From IMG/VR virus record IMGVR_UViG_3300008110_000030, positions 1 through 64,000 of that record: a stretch of DNA of 64,000 bases; one strand, given 5' to 3'. Shown here piece after piece: positions 1 to 7,551 of this stretch. Position numbers and translations under genes: made by a program. Every line of letters begins with the position of its first letter. Positions within the stretch are counted from its first letter, which is position 1. The notes beneath the pieces were generated by a model. It made no database searches, was not told where the DNA came from, and worked only from the letters and a program-made list of their open reading frames with translations.

Positions 1-40
1 GTTTAGCAAACTGCTGCCTTAACCACTCGGCCAACCTTCC
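1..40 (-). tRNA. tRNA-Ser(GCT), truncated at window edge
   Basis: Reverse complement GGAAGGTTGGCCGAGTGGTTAAGGCAGCAGT-TTGCTAA-AC: D-arm plus anticodon loop GCT. Confidence 0.85.
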
Positions 41-206
41 ATTAGTTGATAGTACTCACCGTCTATGACAACGTGTCTATTTAGGAGTCCTGCGCTAACA
101 GTTCCAAAGCATCTAACAACAGTTATATCAGACTTCGCGCCATGCCAGCGGATGTCGTGTAGTATATGCGTCCATATACGATACCTGTCAAGTGCTATCA
201 ACTAAT
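41..206 (-). ncRNA. Candidate structured RNA closed by a 16-bp stem, filling the spacer between tRNA-Leu and tRNA-Ser
   Basis: 41-56 attagttgatagtact and 191-206 agtgctatcaactaat are inverted repeats (15/16); internal hairpin GTATATG-GACG-CATATAC. Confidence 0.5.
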
Positions 207-289
207 GGTGCCCCAACCGAGACTTGAACTCGGACGCACTAGGCACTGGCTTCTAAGACCAGCGTGTCTACCAATTCCACCATCGGGGC
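206..289 (-). tRNA. tRNA-Leu(TAG)
   Basis: Cloverleaf, CTGGT-CTTAGAA-GCCAG, long variable arm, encoded CCA. Confidence 0.95.
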
Positions 290-305
290 AAAAATTTATT
301 AACAG

Positions 306-317
306 TTTTAAAGAACA
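306..317 (-). promoter_or_regulatory. boxA-like antitermination site
   Basis: TGTTCTTTAAAA on minus strand, ~25 nt downstream of a sigma70 -10 box; identical copy at 1901-1912. Confidence 0.6.
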
Positions 318-341
318 ATCGTTAATTGCTTAACGTGCTAT

Positions 342-370
342 ATTATAGCAAGAGTATTTAACTGTGTCAA
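342..370 (-). promoter_or_regulatory. sigma70 promoter
   Basis: TTGACA-17 nt-TATAAT on minus strand. Confidence 0.85.
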
Positions 371-389
371 CAAACTTGACACAGTAATT

Positions 390-464
390 TGGTACACCGT
401 AGGAGAATCGAACTCCTCTTACCTGCGTGAAAGGCGGGTGTCCTAACCGATAGACGAACGGTGC
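390..464 (-). tRNA. tRNA-Glu(TTC)
   Basis: Cloverleaf, CCCGC-CTTTCAC-GCAGG, CCA. Confidence 0.95.
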
Positions 465-465
465 A

Positions 466-618
466 TTAACTTGCTACAATCTTTGGAATATATGGAACTG
501 CTCTTGGTCCACCATACAGTGACTCAAAAAGTTTTTTAGCTTCTTGCGGAGTATCCGCATAGACTCTTTTCTTTTCTTCACCTTGTGGTGTACGCACAGT
601 TGTTTCATACATTGGCAT
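466..618 (-). CDS. Hypothetical protein, 50 aa (MPMYETTVRT...)
   Basis: AAGGAG RBS before ATG at 618; the longer ORF-track start overlaps tRNA-Asp. Confidence 0.75.
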   Translation of the reverse strand: MPMYETTVRTPQGEEKKRVYADTPQEAKKLFESLYGGPRAVPYIPKIVAS

Positions 619-629
619 ATTTTTCTCCT

Positions 630-704
630 TGGCGGTCTCAACGAGAATCGAACTCGTCCCTACGGCGTGACAGGCCATTATACTAACCGATATACTATGA
701 GACC
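630..704 (-). tRNA. tRNA-Asp(GTC)
   Basis: Cloverleaf, ATGGC-CTGTCAC-GCCGT, GCCA end. Confidence 0.95.
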
Positions 705-779
705 ATTCTGAAACACACTACGACAAATGCTATGCACCCTAACTCTATTTGTCTAGGCTGTGGCAATGTGTTTTAGAAT
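705..779 (-). repeat. ACAC/GTGT-stem element, copy 1
   Basis: Arms ATTCTAAAACACAT / GTGTGTTTCAGAAT; related arms at 3471, 4836 and 4884. Confidence 0.6.
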
Positions 780-780
780 A

Positions 781-1665
781 GTGCTAACGCTGAGATTACA
801 CGTTAGCCATAAGCACCTCTAGCATTATAGTTCGCCTTGCGAGCAAACCTTCTCTAGACATCCACTAGGGTCCTTGCGGATCTCCTAGTCTGCTTACAGC
901 ATCGCCGTTTTTAAAGCCAGGCAGTAGGCTTGTCGTCATGTGCTATTCTGCGGATTCCATTCCGTTGACCTTGCGAGCCATTCAAGTGCGCTAACACCTT
1001 ACGAACCCCCCTCCACAAATTAGTGTCACCTTGCGAGCTTCACTAAACTCAATTAGCTTTCGCCTTGAGTATTAGATACTTTTCACACATGACCGAGGCA
1101 GTCTTTGCTTTTTAATGATAGTTGGATTTGAACCAACTGCCGTCTGTTTAACATACAGATGCTCTACCAAATGAGCTATATCGAACCTACCGCGATGAGC
1201 TGCCTCTGTTGCTCCGTAAACTTTTGATCTACGGAATACAACTCACCACATACCTTTTGCCTCGCGAGCTACTCAGTGATGTTTTGCGATCAATGTAGCA
1301 ACGTTTCACAACGTGCCCCACCAACCACTTACATTGCATACGAGCTCTTAGGAGCGACCCTTCGAACCAATACACTACCCTTTCTCATACCAGCTGACTG
1401 ATTGGTTTCGCATGGAAGTCAGCACCACCTGTTACTTTTCATTGCCCCGTGTTCCTTGCGGCACGTCGAACAATGTTCTTTCCCATACATCAGCTTTGCT
1501 GTTACAACCACCGGTCTTATCAGTGATCGCTTCCTCACGGAAGTGAGCAGGCTTGTTTACATGAACCATTGCTGGCGCTAGTATGTAGGCATTCTAGCTT
1601 TGGGTGTATCGCTACACTTATTCTTTGTAAACGGCAAGCCGCCTACAGGACAATAAACTGCCCTT
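781..1665 (-). ncRNA. Giant structured ncRNA (~885 nt), GOLLD-like
   Basis: No ORF >=60 aa on either strand; many GCAA/GAAA tetraloop hairpins (CTCGCAAGG, CCGCAAGG, GGCGAAAGC); embedded tRNA-like domain; 3' hairpin GCTAACG...CGTTAGC; located in a phage tRNA array. Family name is an inference. Confidence 0.7.
1117..1183 (-). tRNA. tRNA-Asn(GTT)-like domain embedded in the giant ncRNA
   Basis: D-arm GCTC-ATTTGGTA-GAGC, anticodon arm TCTGT-ATGTTAA-ACAGA, T-arm GTTGG-TTCAAAT-CCAAC; no CCA. Confidence 0.7.
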
Positions 1666-1886
1666 AATTTATCATATAAAAGTACAACTGGGTATCAGCT
1701 TATGTTGCAAGACCGTCTCTTGCTATTTCCGCTTCTACATTACAGTCCAGTAAACTCCACCGTGCCATACTTGGGTCCCCCCTCAGCTTTCGTGTACGTT
1801 AACCCGAGCTAGTCCGTCGACTAGTTGTACTCTGTTAACGCTACCTAGTGGTACTGGTAACCTTTTGTACTTTTATATGACAAATT
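1666..1886 (-). ncRNA. Candidate ~180 nt RNA enclosed by a 22-bp stalk
   Basis: 1865-1886 pairs with 1666-1687 over 22 bp (one G-U on the minus strand); internal hairpins CTAGTC-GACG-GACTAG and GCAAGA-GACGG-TCTTGC. Confidence 0.6.
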
Positions 1887-1900
1887 GTCATATACCAACT

Positions 1901-1912
1901 TTTTAAAGAACA
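1901..1912 (-). promoter_or_regulatory. boxA-like antitermination site
   Basis: TGTTCTTTAAAA just downstream of the 1938-1966 promoter. Confidence 0.6.
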
Positions 1913-1937
1913 TTTACTATTTGCTTAGTAAGTATCT

Positions 1938-1966
1938 ATTGTAGCAACAATTTGCGACGTTGTCAA
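1938..1966 (-). promoter_or_regulatory. sigma70 promoter for the ncRNA block
   Basis: TTGACA-17 nt-TACAAT. Confidence 0.8.
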
Positions 1967-2049
1967 CAATAATTTTAAATTAATTCGTTGTATTTTTACA
2001 ACAATTATGAATTACTATCATTTTAACATGCCTGTATACTAGTGAAAAT

Positions 2050-2055
2050 TAAATA
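2050..2055 (+). promoter_or_regulatory. T4-like late promoter box
   Basis: TAAATA 10 nt before the ATG at 2065. Confidence 0.5.
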
Positions 2056-2064
2056 AGTTTTACA

Positions 2065-2658
2065 ATGATAACATCAATTTTCCCAATTAACATTTTGGTC
2101 AAAGACTTTGATATGCAAGACTCTTGGACACAAGATATTATTGGTATAGCTAAAGCAGTTTTCGCTAACGATCAAGCAGAAAAAGGATCAGAATCTGCTA
2201 CTGGCAATAACAGAGTCATTTTCTTTACTGAAGAGAATTTATCAACATTCTCAGCAATAGCAGAACTTAGACAAATGTTTGCAGACTCTTTTTATGAACT
2301 TGCATCATCATATCCTAACAATAAATTAACTAAAGATATACTTGAAGAACGCATTAAAAATAATTCAGGTTATCTAAATTTTATGAAAAAAGGTGAACAT
2401 CAATCAGTGCATACACACGATCCTGAAGTGTTTGCTTTTGGTATATTTTACCTAACTGACATTGACAATCACCAATTTGGTGGCGAACTTGTTTTACATA
2501 ATCCTAGCTTTTCAGGAGCTTGGCATTTCAATCATGGACATACGTATAGTGTTCCTACTAAAAAGAACCGTATGGTAATATGTCCCAACACCATATGGCA
2601 TGAAGTCACTCCGTATTCAGGAGAATCAGACCGTATGGCAATTGTAGTAAATCTTTAA
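2065..2658 (+). CDS. 2OG-Fe(II) oxygenase (phage/TIGR02466-like type)
   Basis: HTHD...FYL...WHEVTPY...R facial-triad pattern; paralogous to 5675, 10995 and 15946. Confidence 0.8.
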   Translation: MITSIFPINILVKDFDMQDSWTQDIIGIAKAVFANDQAEKGSESATGNNRVIFFTEENLSTFSAIAELRQMFADSFYELASSYPNNKLTKDILEERIKNNSGYLNFMKKGEHQSVHTHDPEVFAFGIFYLTDIDNHQFGGELVLHNPSFSGAWHFNHGHTYSVPTKKNRMVICPNTIWHEVTPYSGESDRMAIVVNL

Positions 2659-2659
2659 G

Positions 2660-2736
2660 TGGCGCGGCTGGAGAGATTCGAACTCCCGACCCACGAGGTA
2701 GAAGCTCGTTGCTCTAATCCACTGAGCTACAGCCGC
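2660..2736 (-). tRNA. tRNA-Arg(TCT)
   Basis: Cloverleaf, ACGAG-CTTCTAC-CTCGT, CCA. Confidence 0.95.
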
Positions 2737-2739
2737 ATT

Positions 2740-2824
2740 TGGTACCCCTCCTCGGATTCGAACCGAGAAACCTACGGCACTCCTTTTGAGAGAGCTGACT
2801 TTACCAAAATTTGTCTAGAGGGGC
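2740..2824 (-). tRNA. tRNA-Leu(CAA)
   Basis: GCTCT-CTCAAAA-GGAGT, long variable arm, CCA. Confidence 0.92.
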
Positions 2825-2832
2825 AAATTGAA

Positions 2833-3043
2833 TTTGTAAGTAGTTGCCCCATCGTTATAGCAACCATTCACCCGTGTAACAAGCTCGAGCGGGACTCGGT
2901 ACGTCACTTGGGATTCATCCAGTCTGCCTCCTTTACAGGCCTCCGCCGTTCCCGGCAGGTGGGAGTTGAACCCAAAACCTTCTACTGTACAGTACCTTCG
3001 AAGAATACTGAACAGCGTGACTTCACTTGCTGACACTTACAAA
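2833..3043 (-). ncRNA. Candidate ~210 nt structured RNA with a tRNA-type T-loop
   Basis: 9-bp closing stem TTTGTAAGT/ACTTACAAA; GGG-TTCAACT-CCC T-arm; CAGTA...TACTG hairpin; fills the Thr-Leu spacer. Confidence 0.6.
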
Positions 3044-3046
3044 ACT

Positions 3047-3121
3047 TGGTGCCCCAGGATGGAATCGAACCACCACACCCTGCTTACAAAACAGGACCTC
3101 TACCACTAAGGATACAAGGGC
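3047..3121 (-). tRNA. tRNA-Thr(TGT)
   Basis: CCTGT-TTTGTAA-GCAGG, CCA. Confidence 0.93.
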
Positions 3122-3129
3122 AATAACAT

Positions 3130-3224
3130 TGGCGGAAAGCAGAGGAGTCGAACCCCACCCGGCTCGTCACCAGGACCCAGTTTTCAAGGCTGGTCGGGGA
3201 ACCAACTCCCCTGCATTACTTTCC
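3130..3224 (-). tRNA. tRNA-Ser(TGA), atypical 8/4-type fold
   Basis: CCAGC-CTTGAAA-ACTGG; acceptor GGAAAGTA/TGCTTTCC; 4-bp T-stem; extended D-stem; long variable arm. Confidence 0.85.
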
Positions 3225-3230
3225 ATTATT

Positions 3231-3304
3231 TGGCGTACCTCCAGGGACTCGAACCCCGACGAACAGTTTTGGAGACTGTCATGCTGCCATTACATTAGAG
3301 ATAC
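3231..3304 (-). tRNA. tRNA-Trp(CCA)
   Basis: ACAGT-CTCCAAA-ACTGT, GCCA end. Confidence 0.93.
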
Positions 3305-3309
3305 ATATT

Positions 3310-3387
3310 TGGAGTAGCGGGTGAGATTTGAACTCACGGTTTTTCGGATTTGCAATCCGATGCAATGGGCCGCTCTGCCACCGCTAC
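3310..3387 (-). tRNA. tRNA-Cys(GCA)
   Basis: TCGGA-TTGCAAA-TCCGA, TCCA end. Confidence 0.93.
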
Positions 3388-3394
3388 ATTAATT

Positions 3395-3469
3395 TGGTGG
3401 TAATGAGTGGACTTGAACCACTAACAGTCTCCGTATGAAGGAGGTGGACTACCATTGTCCTACATTACC
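3395..3469 (-). tRNA. tRNA with CAT anticodon (elongator Met or Ile2)
   Basis: CTCC-TTCATAC-GGAG; lacks the initiator GGG/CCC pairs; ACCA end. Confidence 0.85.
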
Positions 3470-3470
3470 A

Positions 3471-3555
3471 TATGGAAGCACACTCATCACTTTTCGCAAC
3501 GGTGGTGTGAAGTCCTTACAACCTAAACTATGTTTAGGCAAAGTGTGCTTTCATA
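3471..3555 (-). repeat. ACAC/GTGT-stem element, copy 2
   Basis: Arms TATGAAAGCACACT / AGTGTGCTTCCATA; fills the Lys-Met spacer. Confidence 0.6.
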
Positions 3556-3630
3556 TGGTAGGGGCACAGAGAATCGAACTCTGATTAATAGGTTAAAAGC
3601 CTACTACTTTAGCCGTTAAGTTATACCCCC
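3556..3630 (-). tRNA. tRNA-Lys(TTT)
   Basis: GTAGG-CTTTTAA-CCTAT, CCA. Confidence 0.93.
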
Positions 3631-3680
3631 GACATCTTATCACTCTTGTCACTTGTCATGACAGATCTCCTTTTTAAAAA

Positions 3681-3758
3681 TGGTCTGTGTGGTAGGATTT
3701 GAACCTACGGCCTCCTCGTTCCAAACAAGGCCGTCTACCGGGCTGACATTACACACAG
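3681..3758 (-). tRNA. tRNA-Pro(TGG)
   Basis: CCTTG-TTTGGAA-CGAGG, C1 start, CCA. Confidence 0.93.
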
Positions 3759-3783
3759 ATAAACTTTATTTCATAAATACAAG

Positions 3784-4026
3784 ATGACACGCTTATATGC
3801 ATATTACTGTATAAAGAAATTTATAATCTTCTTCCCTACACCAGTATTTTTAATACTGTCTTTGTGTAGTATTTTTTACTTTAAGTCGCCAATGTGCGGC
3901 GGCTTTTCATATGAAATGTCACTAATGTGGTTTCTTATGGCACTGGCACATTCAAAGCCTTGGATTGAATATATTGAAATCAAACGCTGTCCTAATGGAT
4001 GCGGTTGTGATTGCAATACTAACTAA
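3784..4026 (+). CDS. Small membrane protein with Cys-rich C-terminus
   Basis: Two hydrophobic segments, tail CPNGCGCDC; TAAATA at 3774-3779. Confidence 0.65.
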   Translation: MTRLYAYYCIKKFIIFFPTPVFLILSLCSIFYFKSPMCGGFSYEMSLMWFLMALAHSKPWIEYIEIKRCPNGCGCDCNTN

Positions 4027-4028
4027 CT

Positions 4029-4102
4029 TGGCAGAGGGTACTGGGATCGAACCAGTGATGACAGAGTCAAAGTCTGTAGTGTTACCGCTACACTAACCCC
4101 CA
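4029..4102 (-). tRNA. tRNA-Gln(TTG)
   Basis: ACAGA-CTTTGAC-TCTGT, GCCA end. Confidence 0.93.
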
Positions 4103-4111
4103 ACAAAAACT

Positions 4112-4187
4112 TGGTGCTACCTAGAGGAATCGAACCTCTTTCAACGGTGCTTCAAACCGCCGCTATGACCACATCAGCTAAAGTAGC
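4112..4187 (-). tRNA. tRNA-Phe(GAA)
   Basis: GCGGT-TTGAAGC-ACCGT, CCA. Confidence 0.9.
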
Positions 4188-4189
4188 AT

Positions 4190-4263
4190 TGGGGTGAAGT
4201 GGGGAATCGAACCCTCTCTTACTGTTTCACAGACAGCAGTGCAACCACTACACTAACAACACC
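4190..4263 (-). tRNA. tRNA-His(GTG)
   Basis: GCTGT-CTGTGAA-ACAGT; G-1:C73; two T-T mismatches in acceptor stem. Confidence 0.88.
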
Positions 4264-4269
4264 ATTGTT

Positions 4270-4346
4270 TGGCCGGCCCGGAGAGACTCGAACTCCCAAC
4301 CTCTAGTTTCGAAGACTAGCACTCTAATCCATTGAGTTACGGACCG
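4270..4346 (-). tRNA. tRNA-Arg(TCG)
   Basis: CTAGT-CTTCGAA-ACTAG, GCCA end. Confidence 0.92.
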
Positions 4347-4353
4347 ATAAATT

Positions 4354-4427
4354 TGGTACCTCCACCGGGTAACGATCCCAGGACTGCCGGTTATCAGCCG
4401 ACTGTTATTCCATTTAACTACAGAGGT
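4354..4427 (-). tRNA. tRNA-Ile(GAT) with atypical T-loop
   Basis: GTCGG-CTGATAA-CCGGC; T-loop ATCGTTA; CCA. Confidence 0.85.
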
Positions 4428-4503
4428 AAATTGCTAAGGGACACATTCTAATGTTGTTTGAGACTGAGCTGGGGGTCTGTGTTCAGCAAGTCTCCCATTT
4501 AAT

Positions 4504-4581
4504 TGGCTGTCCGACTAGGGATCGAACCTAGCTCATTCTTCGTTAACAGCGAAGCGCCTACACCATGCTTGCTCTCGGACA
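4504..4581 (-). tRNA. tRNA-Asn(GTT)
   Basis: CTTCG-CTGTTAA-CGAAG, GCCA end. Confidence 0.92.
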
Positions 4582-4588
4582 ATAAAAC

Positions 4589-4663
4589 TGGCGCCGTGGA
4601 CGGGGATCGAACCCGCCTTAATTGGATAGACAATCCAGTGCCCTCCCAGAGGACTACCACGGC
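4589..4663 (-). tRNA. tRNA-Asp(GTC)-like, atypical second copy
   Basis: TGGA-TTGTCTA-TCCA with T37; unusual D-loop; GCCA end. Confidence 0.75.
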
Positions 4664-4667
4664 ATAT

Positions 4668-4743
4668 TGGTATCGCGGACGGGAATCGAACCCGCCTAGT
4701 CACCTTGAAAGGGTGATGACCTAACCCAGAAGTCCACCGCGAT
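4668..4743 (-). tRNA. tRNA-Glu(TTC), second divergent copy
   Basis: TCACC-CTTTCAA-GGTGA, CCA. Confidence 0.9.
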
Positions 4744-4749
4744 GTAATT

Positions 4750-4834
4750 TGGTGGAGTATCCTGGGATCGAACCAGGCGTACCCGAAGGTGGCGGATTTA
4801 CAGTCCACTGCATCACCATTGATGCTTCTACTCC
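4750..4834 (-). tRNA. tRNA-Tyr(GTA)
   Basis: GTGGA-CTGTAAA-TCCGC, long variable arm, ACCA end. Confidence 0.93.
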
Positions 4835-4835
4835 A

Positions 4836-4889
4836 TTAAACACACTGTCTGCGACATTTCAGTCCATACCAGCTCAATGTGTGTATTAA
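4836..4889 (-). repeat. ACAC/GTGT-stem element, copy 3
   Basis: Arms TTAATACACAC / GTGTGTTTAA. Confidence 0.5.
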
Positions 4890-4947
4890 AACATACTAAT
4901 TTACTCTGCACGGCAAATGACTGGCGTTCAAAAAGTATGCTTTAATA
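4884..4947 (-). repeat. ACAC/GTGT-stem element, copy 4 (variant)
   Basis: Arms TATTAAAGCATACT / AGTATGTTTTAATA, 14 bp with one G-U on the minus strand. Confidence 0.55.
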
Positions 4948-4956
4948 CGAACTAAT

Positions 4957-5055
4957 TTTTCCTCCCACACAAGGGATTCCATCCTAGCCGCCGCCCGTTT
5001 GCCCCATGTTTTAAGTGCGGAGCCAGGACCTCGTTTCCTGTATATTCACACTTTG
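4957..5055 (-). ncRNA. Candidate pseudoknotted RNA
   Basis: AAGTGTG/CGCACTT stem, nested CAGG/CCTG, possible GCTCC/GGGGC pairing, TCCC/GGGA hairpin; GC-rich island. Confidence 0.45.
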
Positions 5056-5060
5056 TACTA

Positions 5061-5234
5061 TTAGTCTACACTAAACGTTGGTGCTTTCGCTAACGCTTCG
5101 TGATACTTTCTAGCACGATCGAACTTATCTTGAATAAGTTTTTGAAGTTGTTCTTTAGACATTTCTCCAAGAACAGCTTCATAAGCCTGTTCAACAACAC
5201 GTTCATTTAATTTTGCGTAATCTATCTTTTCCAT
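5061..5234 (-). CDS. Hypothetical helical protein, 57 aa (MEKIDYAKLN...)
   Basis: Translated by hand; AAAGGA RBS; below the ORF-track size cutoff. Confidence 0.7.
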   Translation of the reverse strand: MEKIDYAKLNERVVEQAYEAVLGEMSKEQLQKLIQDKFDRARKYHEALAKAPTFSVD

Positions 5235-5250
5235 TTTTCCTTTCCAAAAA

Positions 5251-5283
5251 CAAAAAACCCTAGGGTTTTTAATCCTAGGGTCC
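5251..5283 (-). terminator. Intrinsic terminator, probable attenuator
   Basis: ACCCTAGG-loop-CCTAGGGT followed by TTTTT. Confidence 0.75.
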
Positions 5284-5314
5284 TTGAAGTTTTGAAATGT
5301 TTCTAAGTTGTTAC

Positions 5315-5461
5315 TTAGTCATCCCAGCCCTCCTGGACCCTGGTAATCTCTGATGTGCGATCATATCCTAGACTCATATTAATCGCAGACCAATAGGCTG
5401 GCAGAAAGCCGCCTACCTGGGGTTTGCAATTATGTTGTCTAAAATTCGATTGCGTTTGCAT
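5315..5461 (-). CDS. Candidate leader peptide (MQTQSNF...QEGWDD)
   Basis: Stop codon lies 32 nt before the terminator; could also start at GTG 5503. Confidence 0.45.
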   Translation of the reverse strand: MQTQSNFRQHNCKPQVGGFLPAYWSAINMSLGYDRTSEITRVQEGWDD

Positions 5462-5521
5462 TTTGATTACCGTCTTAACCTTTTGTTTAAAATTTACACA
5501 CACTTTTAAGTGTATGTTCTA

Positions 5522-5550
5522 ATTGTACATTTTATTTAGTCTTTTGTCAA
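5522..5550 (-). promoter_or_regulatory. sigma70 promoter with an embedded TAAATA late box
   Basis: TTGACA-17 nt-TACAAT; TAAATA at 5533-5538. Confidence 0.75.
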
Positions 5551-5618
5551 CCACTCATTTGTCTTTTGACAAAAACATTTATGACAATTAACAATGATTA
5601 CTTCTACAACTTGTCTCT

Positions 5619-5647
5619 ATTGTATAGCACTTACTTGCAGTTGTCAA
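5619..5647 (-). promoter_or_regulatory. sigma70 promoter (tandem upstream promoter)
   Basis: TTGACA-17 nt-TACAAT. Confidence 0.75.
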
Positions 5648-5674
5648 GAACTTTTTTGTTGTATTTTTACAACA

Positions 5675-6268
5675 CTAGTCGTCTAACAACAAATTGAAGT
5701 CAACTGGGATCGCTAGACGAAATCTGTCATAGTAAGGGGTTACCCAATGATACAGAAAGCAAGGAAAAACTAGTAGGTCACCTGAGTTTGGTTGGTACTC
5801 AATAGACCTAAACATTGGTTGAATTTCTTGTGGATAGCCTCTATTGGCATTCACTCTAGGGTCATCAAAAACTATTGCCCCACCGTCTGCTTGATTGTCT
5901 GCTAATAGATAAAATACTGCTGATATGTGTGATCCAGAATGATTGTGTGTATTCATGTAGTATCCCTTTGAATATCCGGCAATCCAGCCACGAATACTAC
6001 TACCAGGATAATCTTTAATATCTAGTTTAAAAACTTCTTTTAAATATCTTGAAAATGCTGGAATCACCACGTCGTCTTTAAATTTTTGGATAATTTTGGA
6101 ATCAGTATCAAAAATGTTTTCTTGTCGAATATCACTAGGTGGATTTTCTAAATCATACATTGAAAATAACTCATTAATAACATTGCCCAATAATTCTTGA
6201 TCTTTGATTGTATCTTTAATTACAGTCGTAGGCCAAAGAGAATTAATTCCTTCATTTATCAAGATCAA
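5675..6268 (-). CDS. 2OG-Fe(II) oxygenase (TIGR02466-like)
   Basis: HNHSGSHISAVFYL...DPR...HWVTPY...R. Confidence 0.8.
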   Translation of the reverse strand: MILINEGINSLWPTTVIKDTIKDQELLGNVINELFSMYDLENPPSDIRQENIFDTDSKIIQKFKDDVVIPAFSRYLKEVFKLDIKDYPGSSIRGWIAGYSKGYYMNTHNHSGSHISAVFYLLADNQADGGAIVFDDPRVNANRGYPQEIQPMFRSIEYQPNSGDLLVFPCFLYHWVTPYYDRFRLAIPVDFNLLLDD

Positions 6269-6653
6269 ACTCCTTTAAGAAATACATTTTTATATCTGGG
6301 ACAATGCCAATATCTTCATTAAAATTAAAACCCACTGCGTTCAGTATCTTGTTGTATGTATCCTTATCCTGCTCGTAGGGAACATAATATGGATCATTGC
6401 CATGTAGCAAATCAGGATCATTAAGTGATTCATAGAAATCTTCATTAAAATGCTGATTAAGCCAACGAGCATAGCATATGGCAACTACATAACTTTTAGC
6501 AGGGTAAACCCAGCCTAGTTCGTTGGTTGTAAAATACTTGATAGCATTTTCTAAGATATCATCTTTTATTTCAACCGTGTGTAAACTTAAATCATCATCG
6601 TGATCAGTATTAAGCCTGTGAAATATCTCTTGACGTATTTTCCATTCTTTCAT
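6252..6653 (-). CDS. Hypothetical protein in the radical SAM cluster
   Basis: Overlaps both neighbours; PAKSYVVAICYARWL motif. Confidence 0.75.
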   Translation of the reverse strand: MKEWKIRQEIFHRLNTDHDDDLSLHTVEIKDDILENAIKYFTTNELGWVYPAKSYVVAICYARWLNQHFNEDFYESLNDPDLLHGNDPYYVPYEQDKDTYNKILNAVGFNFNEDIGIVPDIKMYFLKEFDLDK

Positions 6654-7551
6654 AATATTCTAATAATCCTCTATAGCCGTTACAACTATTATTTAGATCC
6701 TTGACGTATCTATAATGCTCAGTTAGGCAGTGACCTTTAAACGGGCAACTTTGGCATATTGGGCTTAAACTTTTCTTTTCCTTTTCTGCCCATGTGATGT
6801 AATCGTCAAAGCTATCTAATTCTAAAAAATACTCGTTGTCATTAAGATCAAATTCTAAAACAGCAAATTTTCCGTTAGGAGTAATGTACACATGGTCATC
6901 ACTAAAACTGTTGTATATTTTATCTAAACTATCTTGTATATGATATTCATTAATAAACTCAAACTTTTTATCCACTGGACTCTCTAGCCATTTGATAACA
7001 AAGTTTTCAAAATCTCTGTGTGACACACTATGACAATTAGCTTGGTTGGTACTGTATGGTTTGATCTCAACACTGGTAATAGCAGTACACATGTTTAGTT
7101 CATTGATCATTTCATCAACATCAAGTCCAAGAACATCCTTACTGGCAAGTACCAATACTGATAGATTCTTTCTTGACTGCAACATATTATTGAATACCTG
7201 TCTACTCTTCTCCCTAGCAGTAAAATCATAACTAACACTTAGCGAGATGTCATCATCAAAAAACCAGTCGTGTATCATACTATAATTAGTGATAATGTTT
7301 ATGGCACCTGTATAATATTTTTTAATAACACGTTTGAGATCAAAAAACTCTTCACGTTTTAATACACCAATCTCTCCACCATACAAATCAACATGATCAA
7401 TTTTGGTATGTGTGACTATTTCTAACAGTTTTTCTTCTAGTTGTTTAGATGTAATGGTTTTTCTATCTTTAAGCTGATCTTTTGTCAAATAACAGAAGTT
7501 GCAACTAAAATTACAATAATAAGAAGGGTTAATGGATATGTTAATACTCAT
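6610..7551 (-). CDS. Radical SAM protein with C-terminal SPASM/twitch-type Cys cluster
   Basis: CNFSCNFC; LYGGEI; CQSCPFKGHC...C. Confidence 0.88.
   Translation of the reverse strand: MSINISINPSYYCNFSCNFCYLTKDQLKDRKTITSKQLEEKLLEIVTHTKIDHVDLYGGEIGVLKREEFFDLKRVIKKYYTGAINIITNYSMIHDWFFDDDISLSVSYDFTAREKSRQVFNNMLQSRKNLSVLVLASKDVLGLDVDEMINELNMCTAITSVEIKPYSTNQANCHSVSHRDFENFVIKWLESPVDKKFEFINEYHIQDSLDKIYNSFSDDHVYITPNGKFAVLEFDLNDNEYFLELDSFDDYITWAEKEKKSLSPICQSCPFKGHCLTEHYRYVKDLNNSCNGYRGLLEYYERMENTSRDISQA

Follow-up and report, generated by a model that had tools for sequence, protein, structure and literature searches.

How might a large freshwater phage adjust the supply of its own tRNAs to the translational state of the cell it infects? 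The question is raised by the region in front of the tRNA genes in the window analysed here, the first 64,000 nucleotides (64 kb) of the 214,617-bp IMG/VR virus record IMGVR_UViG_3300008110_000030. The original prediction was that a leader ORF and a terminator on the minus strand (5251-5647) form a ribosome-coupled attenuator that controls the whole tRNA array, with the layout of amino-acid operon attenuators, and that ribosome progress, and hence host tRNA status, tunes phage tRNA expression. The observation itself is confirmed, with every element lying where it had been placed, whereas the interpretation drawn from it is only partly supported. Altogether, the comparative evidence below favours, as more likely than not, a ribosome-dependent attenuator that would read through by default and terminate when a ribosome occupies the last 10 or so codons of the leader ORF.

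Related contigs of 342-356 kb recur, so these are jumbo phages from freshwater samples. A BLASTN search of GenBank phages returned only tRNA-sized matches and no close relative, and host hints are limited to two: a tRNA-Tyr resembling that of a Limnohabitans phage, and a 6.2-kb contig (JBBAKF010000113.1, match at 5894-5916) of a MAG labelled Polynucleobacter sp., which was the only match in the prokaryote genome collection and is probably a mis-binned phage contig, and so only a weak hint.

The leader and its alternative RNA structures

On the minus strand, two sigma-70-type promoters (TTGACA-17-TACAAT), each matching 11 of 12 consensus positions, lie at 5647-5619 (distal) and 5550-5522 (proximal), with the predicted start of the proximal transcript near 5515. 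In nearly all relatives, tandem or triple near-consensus promoters stand at the same spacing. The 5' end of the proximal transcript carries a stem-loop (5517-5496) that is part of the minimum-energy fold and is replaced in relatives by a hairpin of different sequence at the same place. The leader ORF runs from ATG at 5461 to TAA at 5317-5315 (48 codons, ending RVQEGWDD), and is followed by an intrinsic terminator (5283-5246) with an 8-10 bp stem, ACCCTAGG/CCTAGGGT (stem 5283-5257), a 9-nt A-rich loop and a T6-G-T5 tail; a terminator scan missed it only because it accepts loops of at most 8 nt. The strands AGGGTCC (5341-5335) and GGACCCT (5283-5277) are complementary as originally described, and belong to a 70-nt antiterminator hairpin (5343-5274) with lower, middle and top stems, in which 5343-5335 pairs with 5283-5274 and thereby excludes the terminator. 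The shared strand, GGACCCUAGG (5283-5274), is both the 3' strand of the lower stem of the antiterminator and the 5' arm of the terminator, while the ORF covers the whole 5' strand of the hairpin and its stop codon lies in the top stem.

In this sequence alone, a 7-nt complement within about 100 nt is only mildly unlikely (roughly 0.03 by a simple estimate). However, the region folds far better than shuffled sequences (z = -7.0 for 5236-5520 and z = -4.85 for 5245-5345), and the minimum-energy fold forms exactly the proposed antiterminator. A pairing of the start region with the strand just before the antiterminator, also seen in the window's minimum-energy fold, is not conserved beyond L002 (L followed by a number denotes a related locus or its leader) and was rejected.

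The decisive evidence is comparative, conservation of the antiterminator pairing in relatives having been named in advance as a test. Thirty-nine related loci retrieved through the 57-aa protein encoded downstream gave 32 distinct leaders, including that of the window, and RNAalifold recovers the antiterminator from them. The shared strand occurs in 10 variants among the 32 leaders, each matched by both the upstream strand and the 3' arm of the terminator; examples include a U-to-C change matched by A-to-G on both partners, an added A:U pair in L020, L033 and L038, and wholly different strands in L010, L029 and L040. For the terminator, 98.7% of cells are paired, 6 of 12 pairs changed on both sides, 0 of 500 shuffles reach the observed values, and slid controls fall to 74-78%. 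For the antiterminator, 12 of 17 pairs changed on both sides and 0 of 500 shuffles reach the observed values in a covariance-model alignment of 33 copies, although this alignment stays one column off for leaders of the GGGGTCC type, so that its 78.7% paired is an underestimate. Per-sequence folds and a permutation test were therefore used in addition: pairing each leader's own 5' strand with its own shared strand beats swapped partners in all but 10 of 20000 permutations, which were at least as good.

Two further hairpins lie inside the ORF. H1 (5420-5390) covaries in the RNAalifold fold of the main clade (for example AGGC/GCCU against GUGC/GCAC), and its 3' end holds a nearly invariant UGG (5392-5390) that stands in the aligned column in 88 of 94 leaders. 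H2 (5386-5357; GCGAUUA with UGAUCGC) is conserved mostly in sequence, with weak covariation support. RNAalifold on the gap-rich 94-leader alignment returned no structure. The terminator loop (5273-5261) is conserved (AYUAAAMAC); when the antiterminator forms, the loop pairs with the U tract in the minimum-energy fold, and RNAalifold also pairs the U tract with the Shine-Dalgarno region of the next gene, making a second, translational layer possible. Searches of Rfam 15 returned no family for the leader or for the downstream spacer RNA at E <= 1 across 1-7000, and nothing credible at E <= 10 across 4820-5530. No second copy of the element was found in the 214-kb record.

An open reading frame with a variable peptide

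All 32 leaders have an ATG ORF of 38-51 codons, with 0 in-frame stops against 100 and 149 stops in the other two frames. Dinucleotide shuffles give such an ORF with a probability of 0.007-0.07 per leader, taken per lineage across at least six divergent lineages that are too divergent to align well. A DNA pattern derived from the shared strand found at least 119 further viral contigs, and all 66 distinct leaders among them have the ORF, which ends 22-32 nt before the shared strand; in total, an ATG ORF of 38-52 codons is open in 94 of 94 distinct leaders. The conserved start is the ATG at 5461, whereas the GTG at 5503 is not conserved. The distance from the AUG to the conserved UGG takes six values and that to the conserved GAUCG takes seven, all multiples of three. 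The distance to the antiterminator motif takes 13 values in two frames, yet the stop lies in the apex of the hairpin in all 32 leaders.

By contrast, the peptide evolves almost neutrally. Overall pN/pS is 0.85, against 0.91-0.94 in frame-shifted controls; a lower value of 0.59 in the central segment is matched by 0.53 in a frame-shifted control, and entropy by codon position is flat (0.85, 0.75 and 0.87), so that selection at the peptide level was rejected. Neither the leader peptide nor the 57-aa protein matched Pfam, PHROGs, NCBIfam or the Atlas above threshold. The Trp codon in the EGWDD tail, mutation of which the original prediction had proposed as a check, is not conserved, as the C-terminus varies and even changes frame relative to the RNA motif. 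There is no run of regulatory codons; the single conserved UGG also lies in an RNA helix, and the peptides are diverse. Codon usage in the window's leader and 93 related leaders is the reverse of that of the phage's own genes, with CGG enriched 12-fold, TCG 9-fold, and AGG and CCC 6-fold, and with GAA, GCT and GTT depleted, although this rare-codon enrichment is confounded by the G+C-rich stems; 60 of 94 leaders have AGA within codons 2-12. Comparison of leader codons with the phage's own tRNAs was uninformative, because the arrays cover nearly all amino acids.

An ORF that is preserved while its product drifts is what a regulatory leader looks like, not a protein gene, and the data argue strongly that translation of the ORF is under selection and its peptide is not. 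Ribosome-binding signals are nevertheless weak: the window's own leader has no clear Shine-Dalgarno sequence, and relatives have only weak ones (AAGAG, or AAGGA at about -13). The -10 box ends 47-61 nt before the ATG in most of the main clade (20-32 nt in L017, L028 and L037), but only 7-10 nt before it in the divergent leaders L008, L010, L011, L013 and L029, where the ORF starts at or within a few bases of the 5' end of the RNA, which implies leaderless-type initiation.

The tRNA genes and the spacer RNA

The element is tied to the tRNAs rather than to the small gene that follows the terminator. In the window this gene (5234-5061, minus strand) encodes a 57-aa helical protein and has a strong Shine-Dalgarno sequence (AAGGA, 5242-5238), but it is an optional member of the unit. 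All 58 loci with enough downstream sequence carry a forward tRNA within 1.5 kb, whereas only 45 have a small ORF after the terminator (mostly 49-62 aa, many sharing the short helical motif LT.EQ..KLI..K..RA). No small ORF was called in the remaining 13, in most of which a conserved spacer RNA follows the terminator directly and the first tRNA starts about 200-350 nt downstream.

This spacer RNA (5060-4835 in the window, 226 nt, minus strand) lies immediately upstream of the first tRNA gene, tRNA-Tyr, and is a conserved, previously unannotated structured RNA that a profile finds in 61 of 66 downstream stretches. Five helices (P1-P5) covary, two of them interleave as a pseudoknot, and several single-stranded stretches are invariant (AACG.G, GGGCGG, GGAUG). 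In the mechanism proposed below, it would be the first conserved product of read-through.

Control of the whole array, as originally predicted, is not supported. Two more strong minus-strand promoters (1966-1938 and 370-342, matching 11 of 12 and 12 of 12 positions, both with an extended -10 TG) and a plus-strand gene (2065-2658) split the array; this gene is one of two 197-aa 2OG-Fe(II) oxygenase genes of the same Pfam families, the other lying at 5675-6268 on the minus strand. Only the block 2660-4834, with 17-18 tRNA genes, lies directly behind the attenuator, and the promoter scan found no sigma-70-like site between the attenuator and 2660. Within this block, tRNA-Tyr (4753-4834) is missed by ARAGORN but found by Rfam at 33 bits, and a long-arm tRNA-like gene (3134-3224) that ARAGORN does not call scores 38 bits on the tRNA-Sec model, below its gathering score. 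The distal part of the array contains a GOLLD RNA (787-1249, minus strand; 213.5 bits against a gathering score of 150) with tRNA-Asn (1113-1185) nested inside it. Several relatives also carry a phage tmRNA gene 1-3 kb upstream of the leader (L005 49-447, L014 1565-1981, L027 902-1318); these phages thus encode tmRNA, tRNA arrays and, in this window, GOLLD.

Inferred mechanism, rival readings and known systems

In the reading favoured here, two very strong host-type promoters start a transcript in which the last 12 or so codons of the leader ORF form the 5' strand of the antiterminator. Since the antiterminator is transcribed before the 3' arm of the terminator, it would form first if no ribosome is on its 5' strand, and RNA polymerase would continue into the small gene, the structured RNA and the tRNA block. 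A ribosome that follows the polymerase closely and occupies the last 10 or so codons would hold the 5' strand single-stranded, allowing the shared strand to pair with the 3' arm of the terminator, so that output would fall when the leader is translated promptly and rise when initiation or elongation lags. In a minimum-energy fold scan with a 27-nt footprint held single-stranded, 6 of 8 leaders give the antiterminator with no ribosome or with the P site at codon 35 or earlier, and the terminator with the P site in the last 10 or so codons. L010 and L040 give the terminator throughout at equilibrium, so there the argument is purely kinetic. Moreover, with the stop in the A site, both strands of the lower stem fall just outside the footprint and the scan re-forms the antiterminator in L004 and L008; that the stem cannot close around a ribosome is a steric inference. 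What the analysis establishes is the two alternative structures and their covariation, the conservation of an ORF whose peptide drifts neutrally, the position of its stop codon and the link to tRNAs, whereas the loading of ribosomes on the leader, an effect of its translation on termination, the direction of the switch, and translation capacity or charged-tRNA supply as the physiological signal are inferred from sequence and in-silico folding alone.

Among the alternatives, each considered unlikely, a riboregulator is suggested by the sequence-conserved H1-H2 domain, which lies directly upstream of an antiterminator/terminator platform in the usual riboswitch layout, contributes to a region with a fold z-score of -7.0, and retains UGG, GAUCG and CCAGAG at all three codon positions although pN/pS shows no selection on the peptide. 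In this view, the domain would bind a small molecule, a protein or an RNA and bias the choice of fold, with translation secondary or merely modulating the outcome. The attenuator model does not explain this domain, which could be a sensor of something else. Yet a riboregulator explains neither the ORF open in 94 of 94 leaders nor the constant position of its stop, the closing helix of the domain does not overlap the antiterminator strand and both coexist in the minimum-energy fold, and the divergent leaders L008, L010, L029 and L040 keep the ORF and the switch but lose most of the conserved domain sequence; Rfam offers no matching family.

It is similarly unlikely that there is no regulation, with a small gene followed by a leaky terminator and the long hairpin acting in processing or stability, for example as an RNase III site separating the leader from the tRNA precursor. 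The 70-nt imperfect hairpin has the size of phage RNase III sites such as those of T7 and lambda, and the 9-nt loop suggests a terminator of moderate strength. However, one strand is shared by hairpin and terminator in all leaders and covaries with both partners, which is hard to explain unless their competition is selected, and a real small gene should show constraint on its peptide, where none is seen; codon usage is also the reverse of that of the phage's own genes. Least likely as the main function is a terminated leader RNA of about 270 nt acting in trans as an abundant small RNA or dual-function mRNA, with the tRNAs made merely by read-through. Two or three consensus promoters do drive a short, highly structured RNA that ends in a terminator, and attenuator-derived small RNAs with trans functions are known, such as rnTrpL (PMC6614838), but this reading explains neither the conserved antiterminator nor the ORF kept open to the hairpin apex, and it is compatible with the attenuator rather than an alternative to it. 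None of these rivals explains the open ORF and the shared, covarying strand together.

A further and more tentative possibility, held to be doubtful on present evidence, is that the element is a translation-capacity homeostat, in which the time that host ribosomes take to traverse a neutral, rare-codon-rich 48-codon ORF would set transcription of the pseudoknotted RNA and the tRNA array. Phage tRNA supply would then rise automatically when host tRNAs are depleted, whether by degradation of the host genome, codon mismatch or anticodon-nuclease defences, and fall again once translation recovers. The step from ribosome progress to host tRNA status, already present in the original prediction, remains inference only. 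Why phages carry tRNA arrays is still debated, with codon compensation, replacement of degraded host tRNAs and escape from tRNA-cleaving defences among the proposals (PMC10264068, PMC11464382, PMC11555353). Full-text searches of the literature collection examined found no description of how such arrays are regulated and none of an attenuator in front of one, and a paper on phage tRNA function mentions no promoters, terminators or leaders. A translated leader that gates array transcription would be the first evidence that tRNA supply is under feedback from translation itself, and would make the debate testable, since read-through should respond to tRNA depletion or cleavage. The element is compact, occurs in at least 119 viral contigs and is driven by consensus sigma-70 promoters, and should therefore work in reporter assays in laboratory strains; it also marks the position of a new conserved structured RNA.

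Terminator/antiterminator riboswitches and T-box leaders likewise place a structured 5' domain before mutually exclusive hairpins, and T-boxes also link tRNA status to read-through; here, no T-box, specifier or known aptamer signature was found in the Rfam searches, and the conserved domain lies inside a conserved ORF without overlapping the antiterminator strand. With the leader-peptide attenuators of amino-acid operons (trp, his, leu, thr, pheA, pheST), the element shares a short leader ORF, inferred here to be translated, an intrinsic terminator before the regulated genes, an antiterminator that shares a strand with the terminator, and a predicted logic in which a ribosome that reaches the end of the leader favours termination. 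It differs from them in lacking a run of cognate regulatory codons, in its long leader (42-52 codons against 14-30), in an ORF that ends inside the antiterminator rather than before it, in its target of phage tRNA genes, and in the absence of an Rfam leader family match. Furthermore, no 1:2 anti-antiterminator making termination the default was found, the full-leader minimum-energy fold keeping H1/H2 and the antiterminator side by side, so that an untranslated leader is predicted to read through rather than terminate. Functionally, the element appears closest to uORF attenuators that sense translation stress, such as B. subtilis vmlR and bmrCD, streptococcal msrD and E. coli toiL (PMC9226507, PMC10314930, PMC12121999), in which a ribosome slowed or stalled on a short ORF lets an antiterminator form and switches on genes that help translation, the signal being general ribosome performance rather than one amino acid. 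Those systems respond to antibiotic-stalled ribosomes at defined peptide or codon sites and control resistance factors, whereas in these phage leaders no stall motif is evident, the peptide drifts neutrally, and the product is tRNAs.
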